Of a stretch of DNA of 64,000 nucleotides, positions 1 through 29,386 are shown one piece after another; within the stretch, counting starts at the first letter, position 1; every line of letters begins with the position of its first letter. Under the pieces are notes generated by a model that was not told the origin of the DNA, ran no database searches, and worked only from the letters and a program-made list of their open reading frames with translations. A program made the position numbers and the translations under genes. Source of the stretch: Lepidodermella squamata (Eukaryota > Animalia > Gastrotricha); NCBI GenBank assembly GCA_047495785.1, contig JBLDXI010000046.1, positions 434,001-498,000 of the forward strand, given 5' to 3'.

Positions 1-725
1 CTCAATTGATTCCCAACTCCACTTTCCGCCGGGCCATTTCGCGTTGGCTCAACTTTAACAGGAGTCATTTGGGCAGATAGAGTTTCAGGCTTAATGTGGC
101 AGTAGTACTGGAGCACCTTCTCCTGGCCGTTATTCGCCGACCGGCCAGCCCCGTACCATTTCGCCTGGTAACCAGGTGGGCAGGTAAAGTCGCCAGTTAC
201 AGGATTAGGAACATCATCAGATATCGAATTGCCTTCTCGTTGAATCTGGTAGAAACCACCCAGCTCTGATCCGTTGAAGAACACGAAGCAGATCGATTGT
301 TGACACGCAACTGGCCGAATGTAGCGATCTTCACTGTCGAGAAAACTCGGCGATAGCAGGTTGAAAACGATTGTCTCATAGCCAAGCGGGCATGTGAAAG
401 CGTTTGTGACCGGGTTGATCGCTTCAATGGTCGGCAAATTGCCGTATTTCTCATCGCATTTGAAGAACATCCCGCCAAACGGGTCGAAGCCTCGTGTCTT
501 AGCGAGGCATAAATGCGTCTCTAAGATTTCTTCCTGGTAGTCCGAAACAGGACTTGCGACTAAGAAATCGGTGGTGTTGTCCGGGCAGTAGGCGTTTTTG
601 TCGTCAAACGTGTTGGCAATCAAAGCGCCTCGGCGATACGAGTACAAGCCGCGGAAGCTTGTTGCCTCGCTGCCTGGCAGAACTAAGCACCATAATAAAA
701 GAAATGCCGGACGTAGGGGTGTCAT
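1..725 (-). CDS. Secreted/membrane protein with MPEG1 (Perforin-2) P2-like domain; 5' part only, runs off the window; paralog of the RTK ectodomain at 14827
   Basis: Manual translation from ATG at 725 is open to position 1: signal peptide MTPLRPAFLLLWCLVLPGSEA, then SFRGLYSYR..YCP..HLCL..FGGMFFKC..INPVTNAFTCPLGY..QSICF..LGGFYQ..NPVTGDFTCPPGYQAKWYGAGR..QYYC. Colinear with the RTK ectodomain. Not in the ORF track, presumably because there is no stop inside the window. Confidence 0.85.
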   Translation of the reverse strand, partial: MTPLRPAFLLLWCLVLPGSEATSFRGLYSYRRGALIANTFDDKNAYCPDNTTDFLVASPVSDYQEEILETHLCLAKTRGFDPFGGMFFKCDEKYGNLPTIEAINPVTNAFTCPLGYETIVFNLLSPSFLDSEDRYIRPVACQQSICFVFFNGSELGGFYQIQREGNSISDDVPNPVTGDFTCPPGYQAKWYGAGRSANNGQEKVLQYYCHIKPETLSAQMTPVKVEPTRNGPAESGVGNQL

Positions 726-1670
726 TGTTCCGTAACCATTGCAGCTCCTGAGTCTTGCATTAACTTGGCGCCGTATTATACTTAGAGCCTGAATGCTTGT
801 TGTCAAGTATCTGGCTTATTCACTATGGTCAGCAAGCGTATCGCGTCAACAGCCTCGTAAATTAGACCTATTAGTGAAGGGCAAAATAATCTTTCAAGGC
901 ATAAAACAATCAAATTCAGCCTGGTTTTTTTGAATATACCTCTGGGAAAAATTATTATAAAAACAAGGCTTGAGCGTTTTATTGAAGAGCAGAATCATTT
1001 CTAACCACAATCTTAAAATAGGATTAATTGAATGGAATTAGGGAGAGACACGGCGTTTCCCTGAGACTCAATGTGAAAGACCTCTGATTTTTCTCTGATG
1101 GAACCAGACATGATTGAAAATGAAATAAAATTGATTGTTTTTGACCTTGTTGAACACAATAATAGTTTCAAGTATCGTAGTTAAATCCCATTTATCGATT
1201 TCATGTCACTGCGTCTATTATCAAGCTTTTGATAGGTAAAGCAGCACCAAGTACTGGCCGTGCCGTTTTTTATTCTAAAAATTGAATGAATATGTGGGCG
1301 TGCTTGGATTTTCGAGTATCACGAAATAGCAATTAACCATTTTTTATTGACCATCTCAGTGCAAATATCGATCGGGTATAACCAAAAAAAGGCTCGAACT
1401 CTGAAATTTCATTTTTTCGAATTCACTACTCCTCTTTGCCAAAAAAGAATTCGATAACAAAACAATTGCTTTGTCCGATGGAAAAAATTCCAGCTTAAAA
1501 CTTGTGTATTGTAAACCTTGTTCTTTGCTTGTTTTGCCGAGAAGTACACGGGATGCAGTAGTTTTTATGCTGCGCTCGGTTAAGCACGAATGTATTACAC
1601 TAGCTACGGTGAGCATTAAGTAATAAAAAAGTGAAAGCCAGAGCAACAAAATTACGCATATAATGAAAAT

Positions 1671-3844
1671 ATGTTACAAAAGCTAAAGCATGTAGCTAAA
1701 GCTAGGTTTCGTTTGCTTGTTCTACTATTCGTAAGCCTCGCACTTCTCGTCATCATTCTAGCTGTAATAAACACTTTCTACATCGAGTATGTTGGAGCTC
1801 TGTATCGCAAAATCACCAGCGGTTCTGACTCGCAATCTACGGCAGTTATTTGCCATGACCAGAACGCTCTGAACGAGCAAAGGCGAAAATTTACCTATCA
1901 AGGATGCGGCTCAATTGATAGATGGTTTGACAGCAGAGTCCAAACAAGGGAGAGGGACATCGAAAATGCCAGCCGACTAATTGAAAAGACTCATCTACCG
2001 CGAATCGTTCATTTCTACAGAAACTCACGACCTTTCCCGGATAAATTCACTTTTAAGGTAGACTTTTCACAATGTCCCACATTTTTTCAAACCTAGTTTT
2101 TTCTAGAATTTTATCAGCATTCTGAGCGCTTACAGATTTTTGGAGCCTGATAAGATTATCCTGCATTTAACTGCAATTCCCGACCCTGATGCTGGGCTGT
2201 ATCATCACTGGTGGCAGGAAGCTCTAGATTCCTTACCTTTTCTTGAGGTGAGATACATCGGGAAATTCGCGACTCATTTCGATGAATTGAGTGTGATCCA
2301 ACGAGAAATTCGGTTGCTAGCCGAGGGCGGTATCATTGTGCCACTCGAAGGCATCATTTTCAACGGAGGCGCTTGGCCTGCGGGGGATTACTCGAAGAAA
2401 CTGATGGCTGACGAAGTCGAAATGCTCAAAAATTCAAGCAAGGTTTACCTAATGAACGGACTAGACACTGCAGCAATTTCATGCGAGGACTACCAACCGA
2501 ATGAGAAGAGAAATGCCAGTAACGGAAGTCTGTATGGCGAGAACAGGAATGATGGTCCGATCGATTCTCCATGTTATTCAGTCCCCAGTGGCGTTGAGTT
2601 TTATCCGGTGGATATCATGACAGGCGATGAAGATTTTGCTCAATTAGTCCGATACCTTTTCTACTCGAATCGAAGAGAGATATTACCTCGACCGGCCGAG
2701 CATACTAAGAATCTCACGGTACCTTTGATATGCCATTATATCTGGATTTATGGGTCACAACTCGAATTTGACGCTTATCTCAGCATGCTGAGTTGTCTTT
2801 ACATCGCCAAGTAAGCTTTGAAACCTCATTGAAACCTCCATCAAAATCATGAAATATGTGCTCAGGGCGGATGTTTATGTTCACGGGTCGATGCCCCCTT
2901 CTGGCGTAAGATGGGAGAGACTTAAGACGAAAGCCGGACCACGATTGAAGTTCATCAAAACCTACCTGCCTAATCAAGCCTATGGAAATATGGTAAATCA
3001 TCCAGCTCATATAAGCGACGTTTGGCGAGTTGAAGCGTTGTTGCGGTACGGCGGCATTTACATCGATTGGGACGCGATTTTTCTCAAGCCATTAGATGAA
3101 GAGATGCTGAAACGTGATGCTGTAGTCAATTTCGACATCGTTTTATATCCTGACTATCCAGATGTGATCAGTAACGCAGTTTTGCTGGCAAAACCGGGCT
3201 CGCGATACTTTCAACAAGTTCAGGTTGGAAAACGCCTAAATTTTCACTTTTTAGGGAATTTCATGAGGGTGGAAAATTGCAAGAAAGCCAATTTTATGTA
3301 AATATTTAAAATTTAAATTTATCACAATTTTTAACCTTTAAATTGAGAATTTAAATTGCAATTTTTATTATTGTTGAATTTAAATTAAATTCTGATTTTT
3401 AATGTTTCTTTATGTTAATTTTAGAAATCGATGAAAAATTTCAACACCTTCCAGCCATCTGACAATAGATTGTTGGGTCATTTCTACAATTCGCTGTTCA
3501 TGTATTACAAAGTTTACGAATGTTACCCAGAGGACGTTTACATCGACCCTCGGCTGCAGGTCATATGCTGCTGCGATCGGCGGTGCCATCCTTCATGGAA
3601 GCCGAATTACAAATTGGGCCGACCTGATGCAAATTGGAATTTCGATGTTGATAAAGAACATGCTTACGTCATGCACAACACTTATCCGACGCCGGAGGAG
3701 TTCCGTTCTGAAGATTCGCTGTTGAAATACCCCGATAATTCGACCATGTATTACCGGATCGCGATGAAAGTGCTTTCGCATGCAAATATTGATATTCTAA
3801 CTTTGGTTATGCCGTCTAATACGTCCACAACGATAAAGCCCTAA
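1671..3844 (+). CDS. Type II membrane glycosyltransferase, GT32 / alpha-1,4-GlcNAc/Gal transferase-like (DXD), 4 exons
   Basis: Exons 1671-2057, 2107-2810, 2866-3223, 3425-3844 joined in frame by GT-AG introns. N-terminal TM anchor; motifs PLICHYIW, HISDVWRVEALLRYGGIYIDWD, ISNAVLLAKPGS. Confidence 0.85.
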
Positions 3845-3870: not shown

Positions 3871-5025
3871 ATGAAATTTCACTGGTTAGCCATTTTTCTA
3901 GTTGAATATGCAGCTGCTAAAGTTCTGACGAAAGCTGACGAATTCTATGAAGCTTGCCCTAATGCGAGGCAAGAAGTTTATAGTCCTGGTTGTTCGATTG
4001 GGCAGGTGGAGAGCGCGGCATCTGGCCGTAATACGGAAATCTGTGACCAGACACAAATCGCAGCGAAATTTTACGCAAGCCGTTTTCACAGAATCGACGA
4101 GCCAGCCGAAACTTTCACTATAGCTGGGTCTCTGAGGCTCGAATGGCCTTTAACCTGCAGAGATTTGAGCACTGGTATGAATGAGTATTCCCTTAAGTTG
4201 AATGAAGACCGATTTTGGACGCCTGGCGTCTACCACAGTAATACGATTGACAACTTCGGGATGAGTGGGGATACATTCACGAGCCGCTTTATGGCCTTCT
4301 ACAACCTGAATACCTCTGATTTTCGAATTCTTTGGCAAAAATATGGAATTTTTTCTTCGTCATGCTCTATGGACTTTGAGAATTTCCCGTTTGATGAGCA
4401 ATCTTGCAGTATCGAATTTTGCCTTCAGGAGAACCGAAATGCAGCAACGCTTGTTATAGGGGATGGAATACAGATCCTTGGCGGTTTCATGTCGCCAAGT
4501 AGCAATTGGATGGTTGTAAATTCTTCGACTCGCACTGATGCGGTAACTTTCAGTGGAGACAGGGGAAATGTCATATTTTCAATCCAATTTCGCCGTAGAC
4601 CGGACTTTTACGTCGTTGCGCTCATTCTTCCATGCTTTTTTCTATCGACTCTGGAAATCGGTTCAGTGATGATGGAGCCAAAAATGGCTGATCGGCCTGT
4701 TTTTGCTGTCACCCTACTCCTAGCGTTTGTGTTCCTGCAAAGTGAAATTTTGCAATGGATACCGCCTAAACCTGATCGATGCTTCCTCAGGACATATACG
4801 AACCTTTGCGCTTTGTTCGCTTGGATGAACACTGTGTACACTCTGGTTACAATATGCATCGCCCGTTCGAGTAAAACCATTGAAAAATCGTCTTTTCAAG
4901 TATTTTCGCTATCGATAAGCGCCTTACGGATCGTCGATATAGTCGCAGTAACTCTGGGAAGTCTCTTCCTCATTTCTATAAATTCGATTGCGATCGACAC
5001 CGCTAAAAAGAGCGAGTATCTGTGA
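3871..5025 (+). CDS. Intronless Cys-loop ligand-gated ion channel subunit (divergent, non-alpha), copy 1
   Basis: Signal peptide, FWTPG (loop A WxP), Cys-loop CSMDFENFPFDEQSC, FRRRP before M1, four hydrophobic helices with a very short M3-M4 loop. Confidence 0.9.
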   Translation: MKFHWLAIFLVEYAAAKVLTKADEFYEACPNARQEVYSPGCSIGQVESAASGRNTEICDQTQIAAKFYASRFHRIDEPAETFTIAGSLRLEWPLTCRDLSTGMNEYSLKLNEDRFWTPGVYHSNTIDNFGMSGDTFTSRFMAFYNLNTSDFRILWQKYGIFSSSCSMDFENFPFDEQSCSIEFCLQENRNAATLVIGDGIQILGGFMSPSSNWMVVNSSTRTDAVTFSGDRGNVIFSIQFRRRPDFYVVALILPCFFLSTLEIGSVMMEPKMADRPVFAVTLLLAFVFLQSEILQWIPPKPDRCFLRTYTNLCALFAWMNTVYTLVTICIARSSKTIEKSSFQVFSLSISALRIVDIVAVTLGSLFLISINSIAIDTAKKSEYL

Positions 5026-6859: not shown

Positions 6860-8194
6860 TTTGTGGTGAATGGTGAAAATGCTCTTTATTGCAATTACTT
6901 ATAATATATATAACAATATACAGGAGAATAATCGCTTTTTGGCGCAATACTATCAGCTCTTATCTCGGTTAAGATAGCGAAAATTCTACGCATTATAAGA
7001 TTTGTCGGCACTTTGATGTTCTTTTTAGTGCCGTCTGGGCTTGTATTTCGAGGTGCGATCTTCGACCCCCGAGCTCCCGGGGATGGAAAAATTTTTTTTG
7101 CTGTTTTTGCTAATAATTTGGCTAATAACCGAGCGAAGCGAGAAAATTTTGGAGATTTTCCACTGAAACGCGCCCCAGAACCTTCCAAAATTAACAAAAC
7201 CGTGGGATGATCCCCCCATCCCCCCCTGAAAGTCGCACACTGTATTTGAATATTTACAGTAATTGTTTAATAATTCAAGTGGTAAATGCTCATTTTTTAG
7301 GGCAGAGTTCAGAGCAAGCCAACTTTCTATAGTGAACACATATTTAGATCAGAATAAGACGTGACATTTTAATTTCTTTAAATAACCCCCGTCGTAGTCA
7401 CTGTCCAAATCGATTCTAGTCCCAAATCGAGTATTCAGTAATCACTTTGCTTGAACCACATACTATCAGGTAAAAGGTAAACCACAGTCCGGTATAGAAA
7501 ATCTACAATGGCCATTTCCACTTAGACAAAGCTCCAAATGGGTAACGTGAAGAGACTCGGAGTTCAAAGTGCGTTGTACGCGGCGATCCTACGTTTTGGT
7601 CATGATGTATGACATTCCAACACAGACATTCAGCCTGTACTGTACCCTCCGGTACTTCGCACACTGCTCAAATCCGATAAGGATTTGGCTAGAACGTCTC
7701 GTGTGGGCTTGTAGACTAGATTTTAAGGAATGCAGTGAGAATTTGAGGTGATTGCAGTTTCCTTTTTTCGATTCATGTTTTCCCTCTTATGTTTCTGCTG
7801 CAGGTAAACTTCGATCGACGGCCCCATCCTTCCTGGTAAAAGCCCAATTACAAGTTGGGCCAACTATGCTAATTGGTTGTTTGATGTGAACAAATAACAA
7901 GCTAGCGTTATGCCGCACTGGAAGAGTCACGGTGCTATTGCTTTTGCATGCAGATATTGATAATCGAACACAGAGCTGGAAAACTAGCAACTAGCAGAAA
8001 TGACACATCAGGTGTGTAGAAAATTTTAGCTTAGCAAGCAGTAGAAAATTGAAGGAAATGGTTGTTTATTAGGAAATTGCGAAATCAGTGCGTAGGAAAT
8101 CCTGCAGGTTATCCAACTCTGATCGAAGATTTGTTTTGCTATCAGATGCGATCATGAACAGCAACGAAGTATCTATCAGATGATTAAATTAAAA

Positions 8195-9349
8195 ATGAAG
8201 TTTTGTTGGTTCGCCATGTATCTGTTTAAATTTGTTGCTTCCGAAGTTCGAACGAAAGCTGACGAAATCTTCGAAGCATGCCCTAATGTTAGGCGAGAAG
8301 TTTACACCCCTCATTGTTCGATTCGGCAGGTGGAGAATGCGACTGCAGGCCACATTACGGCATTATGTAATCAGACAAGGATCGCAGCGAAATTTTTCCC
8401 CAGCCGTTTTCACAGAATCGACGAGCCTGCCGAAACCTTCACTATAGCTGGGTCTCTAAGGCTCGAATGGCGTATCAATTGCAGAGATTTCGAACCTGGG
8501 TCCGACGATTATTCCCTCAAGTTAACGGAAGACCAATTTTGGACTCCTGGCATCTACCACAGTAACACAATCGACAACTTCGGGATGAGTGGGGATACAT
8601 TCACGACTCGCTTCATGGCCTTGTACCTCCCGAATACTTCTGAGTTCCAATTTGCCTGGCAAAAATACGGAATCTATTCTTCGTCCTGCTCCATGGACTT
8701 TGAGAAGTTCCCTTTCGATGAGCAATCTTGCAGTATCGAATTTCGCCTTCAGGAGAACCGAATGGCAGCGACGCTTGCTATTATGGATGGAATACAGATT
8801 CTTGAAGGTTTTATGTCACCCAGCAGCAACTGGCAGGTCAAAAACTCTTCGACTCGCACCGATGCGATAACTTTGGACGGAGACAAGGGAAACATTGTGT
8901 TTTCCATCCAATTCCGCCGTAGACCGGACTTTTACGTAGTTGCGCTTATTTTGCCATGCTTTTTCCTATCGACTCTAGAAATCGGCGCAGTTATGATAGA
9001 GCCGAAAATGGCTGACCGGCCTGTTTTTGCTGTCACCCTACTCCTAGCGTTTGTATTCCTGCAAAGTGAAATTTTGCAATGGATACCGCCCAAACCGGAT
9101 GGATGCTTCCTTAGGACATACACGAACCTTTGCGCTTTGTTCGCTTGGATGAACACTGTGTACACTCTGGTTACAATATGCATCGCCCGTTCGAGTAAAT
9201 TCATAGCGAAGTCGACTATTCAAGTCTTCTCGGTATCGATTAGCGCCTTACGCATCGTCGATATATTTGCAGTATTTCTTGGGAGCCTCTTCCTCATTTC
9301 TATAAATTCTATTGCGCTCGACACAGCTAAAAAGAGCGAGTATTTGTGA
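8195..9349 (+). CDS. Intronless Cys-loop ligand-gated ion channel subunit, copy 2
   Basis: Highly similar to 3871-5025 along its whole length, with an almost identical TM region. Cys-loop CSMDFEKFPFDEQSC. Start MKFCW aligns with MKFHW of copy 1; the ORF track starts at 8180. Confidence 0.9.
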   Translation: MKFCWFAMYLFKFVASEVRTKADEIFEACPNVRREVYTPHCSIRQVENATAGHITALCNQTRIAAKFFPSRFHRIDEPAETFTIAGSLRLEWRINCRDFEPGSDDYSLKLTEDQFWTPGIYHSNTIDNFGMSGDTFTTRFMALYLPNTSEFQFAWQKYGIYSSSCSMDFEKFPFDEQSCSIEFRLQENRMAATLAIMDGIQILEGFMSPSSNWQVKNSSTRTDAITLDGDKGNIVFSIQFRRRPDFYVVALILPCFFLSTLEIGAVMIEPKMADRPVFAVTLLLAFVFLQSEILQWIPPKPDGCFLRTYTNLCALFAWMNTVYTLVTICIARSSKFIAKSTIQVFSVSISALRIVDIFAVFLGSLFLISINSIALDTAKKSEYL

Positions 9350-24240: not shown

Positions 24241-24269
24241 GCGCCAGGTTTTATCACCCGTTTTCTTGC

Positions 24270-25316
24270 AAAAAGACATCAAATATTGACAGGGAAAGGT
24301 TGGTAACTGCCTTCGAAAATGGCGAAGATTTTCATGCGGCTGCAAAGGTTCTCGCAATTTCTAAAAGAACCATGTATAATATCATCAACACATATCGCAC
24401 CGATGCTCGCATTGAAGCTGAGCATCGAGGAGGTGCTCCCCGCCGTTGGGAAGCTCAGTTTACTGAACATTTAGTTGGGGCAATCGAAGAAAACTCCCAG
24501 CTGACGTTGGAGGATCTCAGGATGAGACTGCTGCAAAATTTTAATGCTGAATTTTCGATCACGACGATCCACAGAAAATTGGATGGCGCCCTAATTACGA
24601 TGAAACGTCTTCACCCGTATCCCGCTGCTCGCAACCGGGCTGATGTTATTTTGGAACGAGCCGCATATGCGCTCTGGTTCTCTGATATCCGCAATCGCCA
24701 AATTCACTACTACCAAGACGAATTTGGCGTTTCGCTTTGGACTCGTCGCGGCCGTGGCAGACCGCCGAAAGGACAGCGAGCCTATGTTTTACTGCCGACA
24801 GCTTCTCCCGGCAAAAATATGTCTGTGGCGGTGGTAGTTTCACCTGTTGGAGGGCTGGTCTACTACGAAATTTCTGAAACGGGCATGACTGCTGAACGAT
24901 TCGCAACGTTTACCACGCAAACTAGCGAGCGAATTGGCCATCAAAACGAAGCTGTCATTATTCTGGACAATTTGAGAAGCCATTATCCTGACGCCGATTT
25001 TCCGCTGTGGGAGCTGCATCAGTTCAAATTTCTCCCACCTTATTCGCCGTTTTTGAACCCTATCGAAAACGTTTTTTCAGCTGTAAAAGCTGCGATAAAA
25101 AACGAACTAGCTATGCGTAGGCTGGAATACTACCAGCTTATCGAGGCTGCGCGTGTTGTTGGCGCTGTTCTAGAAAATACCCGTCGTGACTTTTCGAGTG
25201 AAATCATTGAAAGGCATCTTCGTGCAGTTATTACACCTGAACTTGTGGCTAATTGCGATCGCCATGTGCTAAACTATCTACCAGCCTGCATCGCGAGCGA
25301 ACCAATAATGGGTTAA
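24270..25316 (+). mobile_element. IS630/Tc1-family transposase (HTH + DDE); true start missing or unclear
   Basis: HTH (AAAKVLAISKRTMYNII), second HTH (SITTIHRKL), QDEFG, ILDNLRSH, FLPPYSPFLNPIE. The first ~70 aa of the track ORF overlap the antisense MULE relic. Confidence 0.88.
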
Positions 25317-27671: not shown

Positions 27672-29386
27672 ATGAGCTGGTATTCAAAAGACAATTTAAA
27701 GGCTAAAATTGCTGATTTTAGACAACGAGAAAGCTCAAAGCGGACAAATCTCCTAAAATCAATCGGTGATAAATCAGATCGGTCAGTCACAAATCTTCCA
27801 GCAACTGAAATTGTTGCGGCAACGAAAGAAGGCCGCCTAAAACCAAGCGATGTTCTGCTAGCCTTTCAATCATCGGCACTCATAACAACTGGCGATCTTA
27901 ATGCTGTCACAGAATTCATCGAAGATGCTTATCAAGCTGCTCTGAAGTTGGACGAGATACCTCAGAACAATCGCGGCCCTCTCCATGGCGTCCCTCTGAG
28001 TGTAAAAGAATGCTTCTTCATCAAAGGGACCGAGACAACCTGTGGCTACAGCCAGTTCCTAGGAGAATGCGTTGAATACCCAGCCGCGCCGATCGTCGAA
28101 TTCCTGAAGTATTTAGGCTGTGTTCCTTTTGTTAAGACCAACATCCCACAGGGCATGTTTTCGATCGATTCGGTCAACCCGATCCACGGCCAGACGAAGA
28201 ACCCTCATGACAAGACTCGTTCACCTGGAGGTTCGTCAAGTGGCGAGGGAGCTTTAGTTGCTTCAAAATCTTCCCTGCTCGGCCTTGCGACCGATGCTGG
28301 TGGTAGCTTACGAGTTCCGGTAAGTTGCTTTAAATTTATTAGATTTTTACTGAATGATTTATTCAGGCATCCTGGTGTGGTTGCTACAGTTTGAAGCCAA
28401 GTTCAAATCGAATCATCCAAGGCGGTGATTTTAACCTCGAATTCCAAGCTCGAATTATTGCCAACGATTACTATTCCCCTGGATTTCTATCGGCAGATGT
28501 TGATTTGCTTGTTGCTGTTTTCCGCAATCTCTACTCGAAATCTACCTTCGAGAAGTTTCCGAACAACTCTTTGCCTCCAATTGAATTTCGCGATGAGCTT
28601 TTTTCCTCGAAGAAGAAGTTGAGAATCGGTTACTGCGAATTCGATGGCATCGTCAATTTGCTGCCAGGCCCCAAACGAGTTTTACGAGAAGCTAGGGAAA
28701 AGTTGGAAAAACTTGGCCATGAAGTTGTTGACTGGCCGGATATCGAATTGTTGAGAAATGGCTACATGGTCTGCTGCAGCACGTTTACAATCGATGGTTT
28801 AGTTGAAGTAATCGAATACATGGATAATGACATTGAAATCAGCTATCCTAACAAAATGACTCATTTGCTGTTCAAACTACCGAATTGGGTCAAGTGGTTG
28901 TTTGAAAAGTTCGCCGGCTTGACCATGGGTCAACTAACGGCTGAAATGATTGGGAACATGCGAACTGGATCTCGGCCGCATGACATGAACTTGGTCTACA
29001 GGAAAATCTTGAAATTCCGTCAGGATTTTGCGAAAATCTACCGCGACCAGGGCTTCGATGCTCTACTTTGGCCTGCAATGCCCTGCCAAGCACTGCCGTT
29101 GAATGCTGCGAGGGAGATAGCACCAGCCTTGAGTTACGTTGTCCTGTTCAATCAACTCAACTGGCCGGCTGGAACTTGCCCGTTCGGTCACGTGACCAGC
29201 CAAGATGAGGCCGAGCTTGAAGCTAATGATGCGCCAAATGGAGATTTCTATTACGCCCAAATGCGGAATTTTCTGAGATCCCCGCCCCAGACGAGTTCAG
29301 TTGGCCTTCCTCTTGCTGTTCAAGTGGCTGCGCCTCAGTTTCAGGAGGAAACAGTGCTTCGACTACTTAAAGAACTTTCTTCTTGA
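27672..29386 (+). CDS. Fatty acid amide hydrolase-like amidase, copy 2 (2 exons)
   Basis: Close paralog of 21041-22765; same intron position (28320-28366); catalytic motifs intact. Confidence 0.92.

Follow-up and report, generated by a model that had tools for sequence, protein, structure and literature searches.

A single-exon, 326-codon gene on the minus strand, which runs off the edge of the window (the whole 64,000-nucleotide stretch analyzed in this study, C46:434001-498000 of a 121-Mb assembly in 151 contigs), is a real, intact and selectively maintained protein-coding gene. Judged from its sequence, the product is a kinase-less single-pass type I membrane protein of the secretory pathway, that is, a "receptor-like protein." Its ectodomain, according to sequence similarity and a predicted fold, belongs to the perforin-2 P2 superfamily, minus the hairpin. 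As it has no MACPF domain and no kinase, the protein is neither MPEG1 nor a receptor tyrosine kinase (RTK). By analogy with known receptor pairs, it may act as a co-receptor or decoy of a sister RTK encoded nearby, a reading to which we assign a probability of about 0.5.

Within the window, 241 stop-free codons were read from the ATG up to the edge (window 1-725, minus strand), which agrees with the open frame reported in the preliminary description of this DNA. The same description remarked that the gene was missing from the ORF list, and the sole reason is that its frame leaves the window, as the list skips frames running off the window end. Reading beyond position 1 (L001), as proposed there, completed the gene with one membrane helix, a 58-residue tail and a stop, and revealed no kinase. 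The open frame contains no in-frame ATG further upstream, and the sequence TATAATA is located about 50 nt 5' of the start codon.

The predicted protein comprises a signal peptide, a 188-residue domain with eight cysteines, a 35-residue linker, one membrane helix and the tail (Table 1). The signal peptide that had been described earlier is recognizable both in the hydrophobic N-terminal residues and in the full-length model; cleavage is likely after ...PGSEA, and homology to the RTK ectodomain begins right there. The eight ectodomain cysteines are residues 47, 73, 90, 112, 141, 146, 182, and 209, and two N-glycosylation sequons are present (N50 and N151). A linker does follow the domain where a Pro/Thr-rich stalk had been claimed, with only a mild richness in these residues (4 Pro and 5 Ser/Thr among 35). 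The full-length model shows low-confidence coil at residues 220-246, a helix at 247-289 and disorder at 291-326. In this order of parts, from P2 through a type I membrane helix to a short cytosolic tail, the protein is like MPEG1.

Table 1. Coordinates of the kinase-less P2 gene, its predicted protein regions and related genes (plain numbers are window positions).
Feature	Position	Strand	Remarks
Start codon ATG	723..725	-	A at -3
Signal peptide, residues 1-21	663..725	-	Hydrophobic core LLLWCLVL; model helix 7-14
P2-type ectodomain, residues 22-209	99..662	-	All-beta; three pseudo-repeats, three strands each
Ectodomain pseudo-repeats	~492-662, 270-491, 99-269	-	Three strands each
Linker, residues 210-244 (210-241 inside window)	1..98 (in-window part)	-	Mostly predicted coil
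Membrane helix, residues 245-268	L001:1420-1491	-	Strong hydropathy peak; model helix 247-289
Tail, residues 269-326	L001:1246-1419	-	Ser-rich, 14 Ser/Thr, no Tyr; disordered from 291
Stop TGA	L001:1243-1245 = C46:433745-433747	-	Same stop in C46 and C29 copies
AATAAA poly(A) signal	L001:1176-1181	-	62 nt past stop of kinase-less gene
P2 receptor tyrosine kinase ORF	12881 to ATG 14827	-	PK_Tyr_Ser-Thr E 8e-74
RTK ectodomain	14195..14755	-	39% identity to kinase-less ectodomain
Different receptor tyrosine kinase	L006:1993-6152 = C46:420993-425152	-	Own signal peptide, large ectodomain
Sushi-P2 gene	L036:1409-4153 = C46:1796908-1799652	+	Intronless ORF, 914 codons

Pfam assigned no family to the 241 in-window residues, even at E 10. 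The best match of a phmmer search against all PDB sequences was 6sb1_A, the isolated murine P2 (E 5e-6), and all significant matches were MPEG1/perforin-2; a family profile searched against PDB sequences reached MPEG1 P2 at E 2e-6. In the PDB, human MPEG1 has NPLTGDFSCPSGY at the aligned motif position, as expected from the close resemblance to the MPEG1 motif that had been pointed out before. According to a previous study, P2 has a pseudo-threefold layout with three repeats of three strands (PMC6989145). The AlphaFold2 model of the ectodomain, built on 45 relatives (pLDDT 90.6, pTM 0.87), contains three groups of three main strands. Its top Foldseek matches were all perforin-2 P2, at a probability of 0.99-1.0 with low TM-scores (0.23). 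VIA-align to 6sb1_A gave Z 9.6 and an rmsd of 3.1 Å over 115 residues with 24% identity, the structural alignments covering mainly model residues 60-193 (repeats 2 and 3). MPEG1 P2 was the best and essentially only structural match: the next non-MPEG1 chains in an unbiased VIA-align pass over 48,161 chains were accessory domains of other perforin-like proteins (Z ≤4.3). Repeat-by-repeat matching to mouse P2 was ambiguous owing to pseudo-symmetric alignments, and the partial coverage probably results from this pseudo-symmetry together with the mouse hairpin, which confuses the register.

The ectodomain shares with the MABP-like P2 of perforin-2/MPEG1 (PDB 6SB1, 6SB4, 6U23) the NP.TG..SCP.GY motif, the threefold occurrence of a three-strand repeat and a cysteine pair per repeat, and in both proteins a linker, a single membrane helix and a short tail come after P2. 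The cysteine pairs 47/73, 112/146, and 182/209 occupy the columns expected for one putative inter-strand disulfide per repeat, and they are conserved family-wide. Different from MPEG1, the protein has neither a MACPF nor an EGF-like part in front; no N-terminal MACPF domain was identified, and nothing separates the signal peptide from P2, which starts at residue 22. In repeat 1, mammalian P2 carries a 45-Å basic hairpin with a hydrophobic tip, which serves to bind anionic lipids (Y427-V452 in mouse), whereas this extended hairpin is absent here: no strand of the model exceeds 11 residues, and the repeat-1 cysteines are spaced by 26 residues compared with about 51 in human MPEG1. The ectodomain also differs from MPEG1 P2 in being acidic and in its degenerated repeat-1 motif.

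The statement in the preliminary description that this gene and an RTK in the window share the same domain was borne out by the alignment of RTK residues 25-211 with residues 22-209 of the kinase-less protein (39% identity; blastp E 4e-45, tblastn E 3e-43), the next best in-window match to the ectodomain being at E 5. This alignment starts with the first mature residue and reaches the last cysteine of both ectodomains, and blastp detected no similarity between their linkers, helices or cytoplasmic parts. Among five aligned sequences, eight of the nine cysteines of the RTK ectodomain match the eight found here, and FGG/LGG, two NP.T...CP.G motifs and WYGAGR are aligned as well; these are the shared positions and motifs that had been named at the outset. 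Both proteins have a type I single-pass layout, and they differ in that only the RTK possesses a tyrosine-kinase domain. Accordingly, the ectodomain of a signaling receptor kinase has its homolog here in a membrane-anchored protein that lacks a catalytic domain. Synonymous sites between the two paralogs are saturated (pS 0.71, dN 0.57), which indicates that the duplication is old; the dN/dS ratio between them is not meaningful for the same reason.

The RTK lies 14 kb from the kinase-less gene, and the two are linked on both contigs that carry them. Because about five unrelated genes separate them, including a sugar transferase, two Cys-loop receptors and a beta-propeller protein, the pair is not tight or operon-like. 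The sugar transferase just upstream of the kinase-less gene is a multi-exon Gly_transf_sug (DXD) gene at window 1671-3844 (+), and the Cys-loop receptor genes are located at window 3871-5025 and 8180-9349.

Contig C29 holds a second copy of both the kinase-less gene and the RTK. The two copies of the kinase-less gene differ at 55 of 981 nt, with 10, 5, and 40 differences at codon positions 1, 2, and 3, respectively, and four-fold sites differ by 14%. The estimate of dN/dS that had been suggested gave 0.09 (dS 0.21, dN 0.019); regionally, residues 1-215 (ectodomain with signal peptide) have a ratio of 0.04, and the linker, helix and tail one of 0.25. Neither copy has lost any of the eight cysteines or either sequon. 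The third-position bias, the low dN/dS and the retained cysteines and sequons indicate a working protein-coding gene in both copies. The kinase-less gene and the RTK are both under purifying selection in two genomic copies, and the family is, as previously proposed, old and selected. That the kinase-less gene is a functionless, decaying remnant of an RTK duplicate is extremely improbable: exact-protein look-ups with both copies matched no record and public data yielded no ortholog, as might be expected of such a remnant, but the frames are intact in two copies despite the four-fold divergence, the cysteines and sequons have persisted, and 40 of the 55 differences fall at third codon positions.

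Approximately 600 bp directly 5' of the ATG (window 726-1300 = L001:2224-2800, compared with L002) contain two differences between C46 and C29, the first 300 bp being identical, whereas the divergence of other flanks amounts to 3-7% in addition to indels. The near identity reflects either strong constraint on a promoter or gene conversion along a tract that stops at the ATG. An upstream ORF of five codons (window 725-739, minus strand; ATG GTT ACG GAA CAA TGA), whose TGA overlaps the main ATG, is also identical in both copies.

Two possibilities had been raised initially, a second P2-RTK or a kinase-less protein, and the tail, the conserved stop 58 codons past the membrane helix in both copies and the AATAAA 62 nt further on settle the matter for the latter; no kinase domain is encoded in the same gene. 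Using the sister RTK as the query, we searched 15 kb downstream on both contigs for kinase-coding DNA. None was found downstream of the gene copy on C29. On C46, the nearest same-strand kinase-coding DNA, and the only such DNA within 15 kb, is 12 kb downstream and belongs to a different receptor, in which one exon encodes both the kinase and a membrane helix, and the signal peptide lies in another exon further upstream that matches Laminin_G_3 weakly, below the cut-off. The kinase-less assignment is right because the stop is conserved and this only downstream kinase is part of another receptor. A donor-like CAG|GTGCAT directly after the membrane helix could, together with the same-strand kinase exon 12 kb away, allow a hidden splice joining the membrane-proximal region to downstream kinase exons, which would make the gene a second RTK. 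We consider this to have next to no likelihood, given that the distant kinase exon has its own membrane helix and an ectodomain encoded by a separate exon with a signal peptide, that an HD-domain gene intervenes on the same strand, that no kinase occurs in the corresponding 15 kb of C29, and that the tail past the donor-like site is constrained (dN/dS 0.25), its stop being conserved and followed by a poly(A) signal. On the opposite strand of the same interval, sugar-transferase-like ORFs without Pfam assignment (L006:6923-8916, +) resemble the Gly_transf_sug gene on the other side of the kinase-less gene.

The gene family postulated in the preliminary description exists and is small. The profile search of this genome, also proposed there, recovered three subfamily loci, namely the kinase-less gene (two copies), the RTK (two copies) and a Sushi-P2 gene, of which no second copy was found in the genome. 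The latter encodes a secreted protein of about 890 residues. Its signal peptide precedes a Cys-rich region; a Sushi repeat and a segment without assignment come next, and the P2 domain is C-terminal. The protein also has a sub-threshold match to DUF7587 and a weak match to a Rhs-family protein chain. A broader profile identified at least eight MACPF-plus-P2 genes in the genome and divergent P2-like domains on contigs C73 and C10. The C10 domain (L017:1096-1992, +; approximately 1008678-1009574) is directly followed by collagen Gly-X-Y repeats. Three of the MACPF-plus-P2 genes are arranged in tandem, head to tail, at C14:331000-345000, adjoined by a P2-only ORF on the opposite strand (L035, 285 aa).

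A maximum-likelihood tree of 132 P2 domains placed the kinase-less gene and the RTK as sisters (SH-aLRT 99), joined by the Sushi-P2 gene at 91, in a three-member clade separate from the MACPF-linked P2 clade of this genome. The separation argues against the possibility that the kinase-less protein is a MACPF-less perforin-2-like derivative with a regulatory role toward the pore-formers of the animal itself, for instance by docking or blocking MACPF-P2 proteins at the host membrane. Such a role would fit the MACPF-P2 genes present, the inter-subunit contacts that P2 mediates in perforin-2 pre-pores (PMC6989145) and the correspondence of P2, helix and tail to the C-terminal half of MPEG1; however, the hairpin that forms the inter-subunit sheet of perforin-2 is also absent, and we regard this role as very unlikely.

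Beyond this genome, a search of 1.84 billion representative proteins gave only 132 matches at E 1e-3 or better (best 3e-39). Screened by motif and hydropathy, these 132 public relatives showed neither a kinase nor the bare layout of signal peptide, P2, helix and tail. The best-scoring relatives (E 1e-14 to 3e-39) are MACPF-P2 proteins of protists and metagenomes, among which P0009 of Amoeba proteus, P0001, P0008, and P0021 are collinear with the ectodomain across all three repeats but are of the pore-former type, with an N-terminal MACPF domain. Multi-copy P2-like repeats occur in Myxococcota and Bdellovibrionota proteins (P0004, P0056, and P0089), and the bacterial P0089 additionally carries a PA14 domain. 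In matches of unassigned source, the partners are phospholipase C, reprolysin, Vps62, malectin, or lipocalin domains; P0045, also of unassigned source, has a sub-cut-off zinc phospholipase C match beside its P2-like domain. No close ortholog was found in the public protein search or in metagenome contigs. A word-indexed search with the full protein yielded no significant hit among 3,330 candidates, a scan of metagenome contigs with the family alignment gave 371 pattern matches with none confirmed, and neighbors in a protein language-model atlas were weak (≤0.81) and generic type I membrane proteins.

The signal peptide would place the compact, hairpin-less P2 domain, putatively braced by disulfides, outside the cell or in the lumen, where it may serve as a binding module. 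We infer that it binds surfaces, because P2 is elsewhere attached to surface-acting effectors (MACPF pore-formers, phospholipase C, proteases, and PA14). Having no catalytic domain and no tail tyrosine, the protein has no enzymatic or phosphotyrosine output of its own; as it could not signal alone, it would either depend on a partner or sequester a ligand. Most likely it would belong to the recognition pathway of the sister RTK, as co-receptor or decoy. Counting against such a partnership are the acidic ectodomain (net charge -8, versus a neutral RTK ectodomain), the restriction of similarity to the ectodomains and the genes between the pair; moreover, the ligands of the two ectodomains, which are 39% identical, may differ.

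That distance between old paralogs is equally in keeping with a tentative second reading, somewhat less probable than the first, in which the protein is a stand-alone recognition or adhesion receptor at the cell surface or in endosomes, independent of the RTK. P2 would then bind a component of microbial or self surfaces (a glycan, a lipid head group or a protein), and sorting or endocytosis would be the task of the Ser-rich tail. P2 occurs elsewhere on secreted or surface proteins beside PA14, malectin, Ig-like, and collagen domains, and MPEG1 itself is laid out as P2, membrane helix and short trafficking tail (PMC10781884). On the other hand, no sorting motif was identified with confidence in the tail, the hairpin-less P2 domain has no known ligand, and the kinase-less gene and the RTK have remained linked on both contigs.

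The co-receptor or decoy reading resembles the logic of plant RLPs paired with RLKs and of the TGF-beta pseudoreceptor BAMBI, in which a membrane-anchored protein with a short tail and no catalytic part displays the ectodomain of a receptor-kinase family. The comparison is one of analogy, not homology, since neither the ectodomain folds nor the lineages are related, and partner and ligand are here only presumed. The bare-anchor P2 protein paired with a P2-RTK is a new combination of known parts, not a new kind of system. The pair provides a simple and testable example, in an animal, of a receptor whose sister does not signal.

A 2023 survey of metazoan MPEG1 considered the P2 domain "unique to MPEG1" (PMC10781884). 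In the present genome, P2 is freed from the pore-former: a receptor kinase and a kinase-less membrane protein carry it, as does a secreted multidomain protein, and it also occurs next to collagen. Together with the P2-like domains of bacterial and other non-MPEG1 proteins, this suggests that P2 is a mobile surface-targeting module and not an MPEG1 accessory. It is a speculative and rather unlikely extension that the three subfamily members form one recognition system, with one target for their shared hairpin-less P2. If so, the P2-RTK would be the sensor, the kinase-less protein a modulator or decoy, and the Sushi-P2 protein a secreted, effector-like component with the common targeting domain, and the animal would have built a recognition system from a domain borrowed from pore-forming immunity.

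Elsewhere in the window, two near-duplicate, two-exon amidase genes (21041-22765 and 27672-29386, +) flank a DDE_3/HTH_32 transposase ORF (24060-25316, +).
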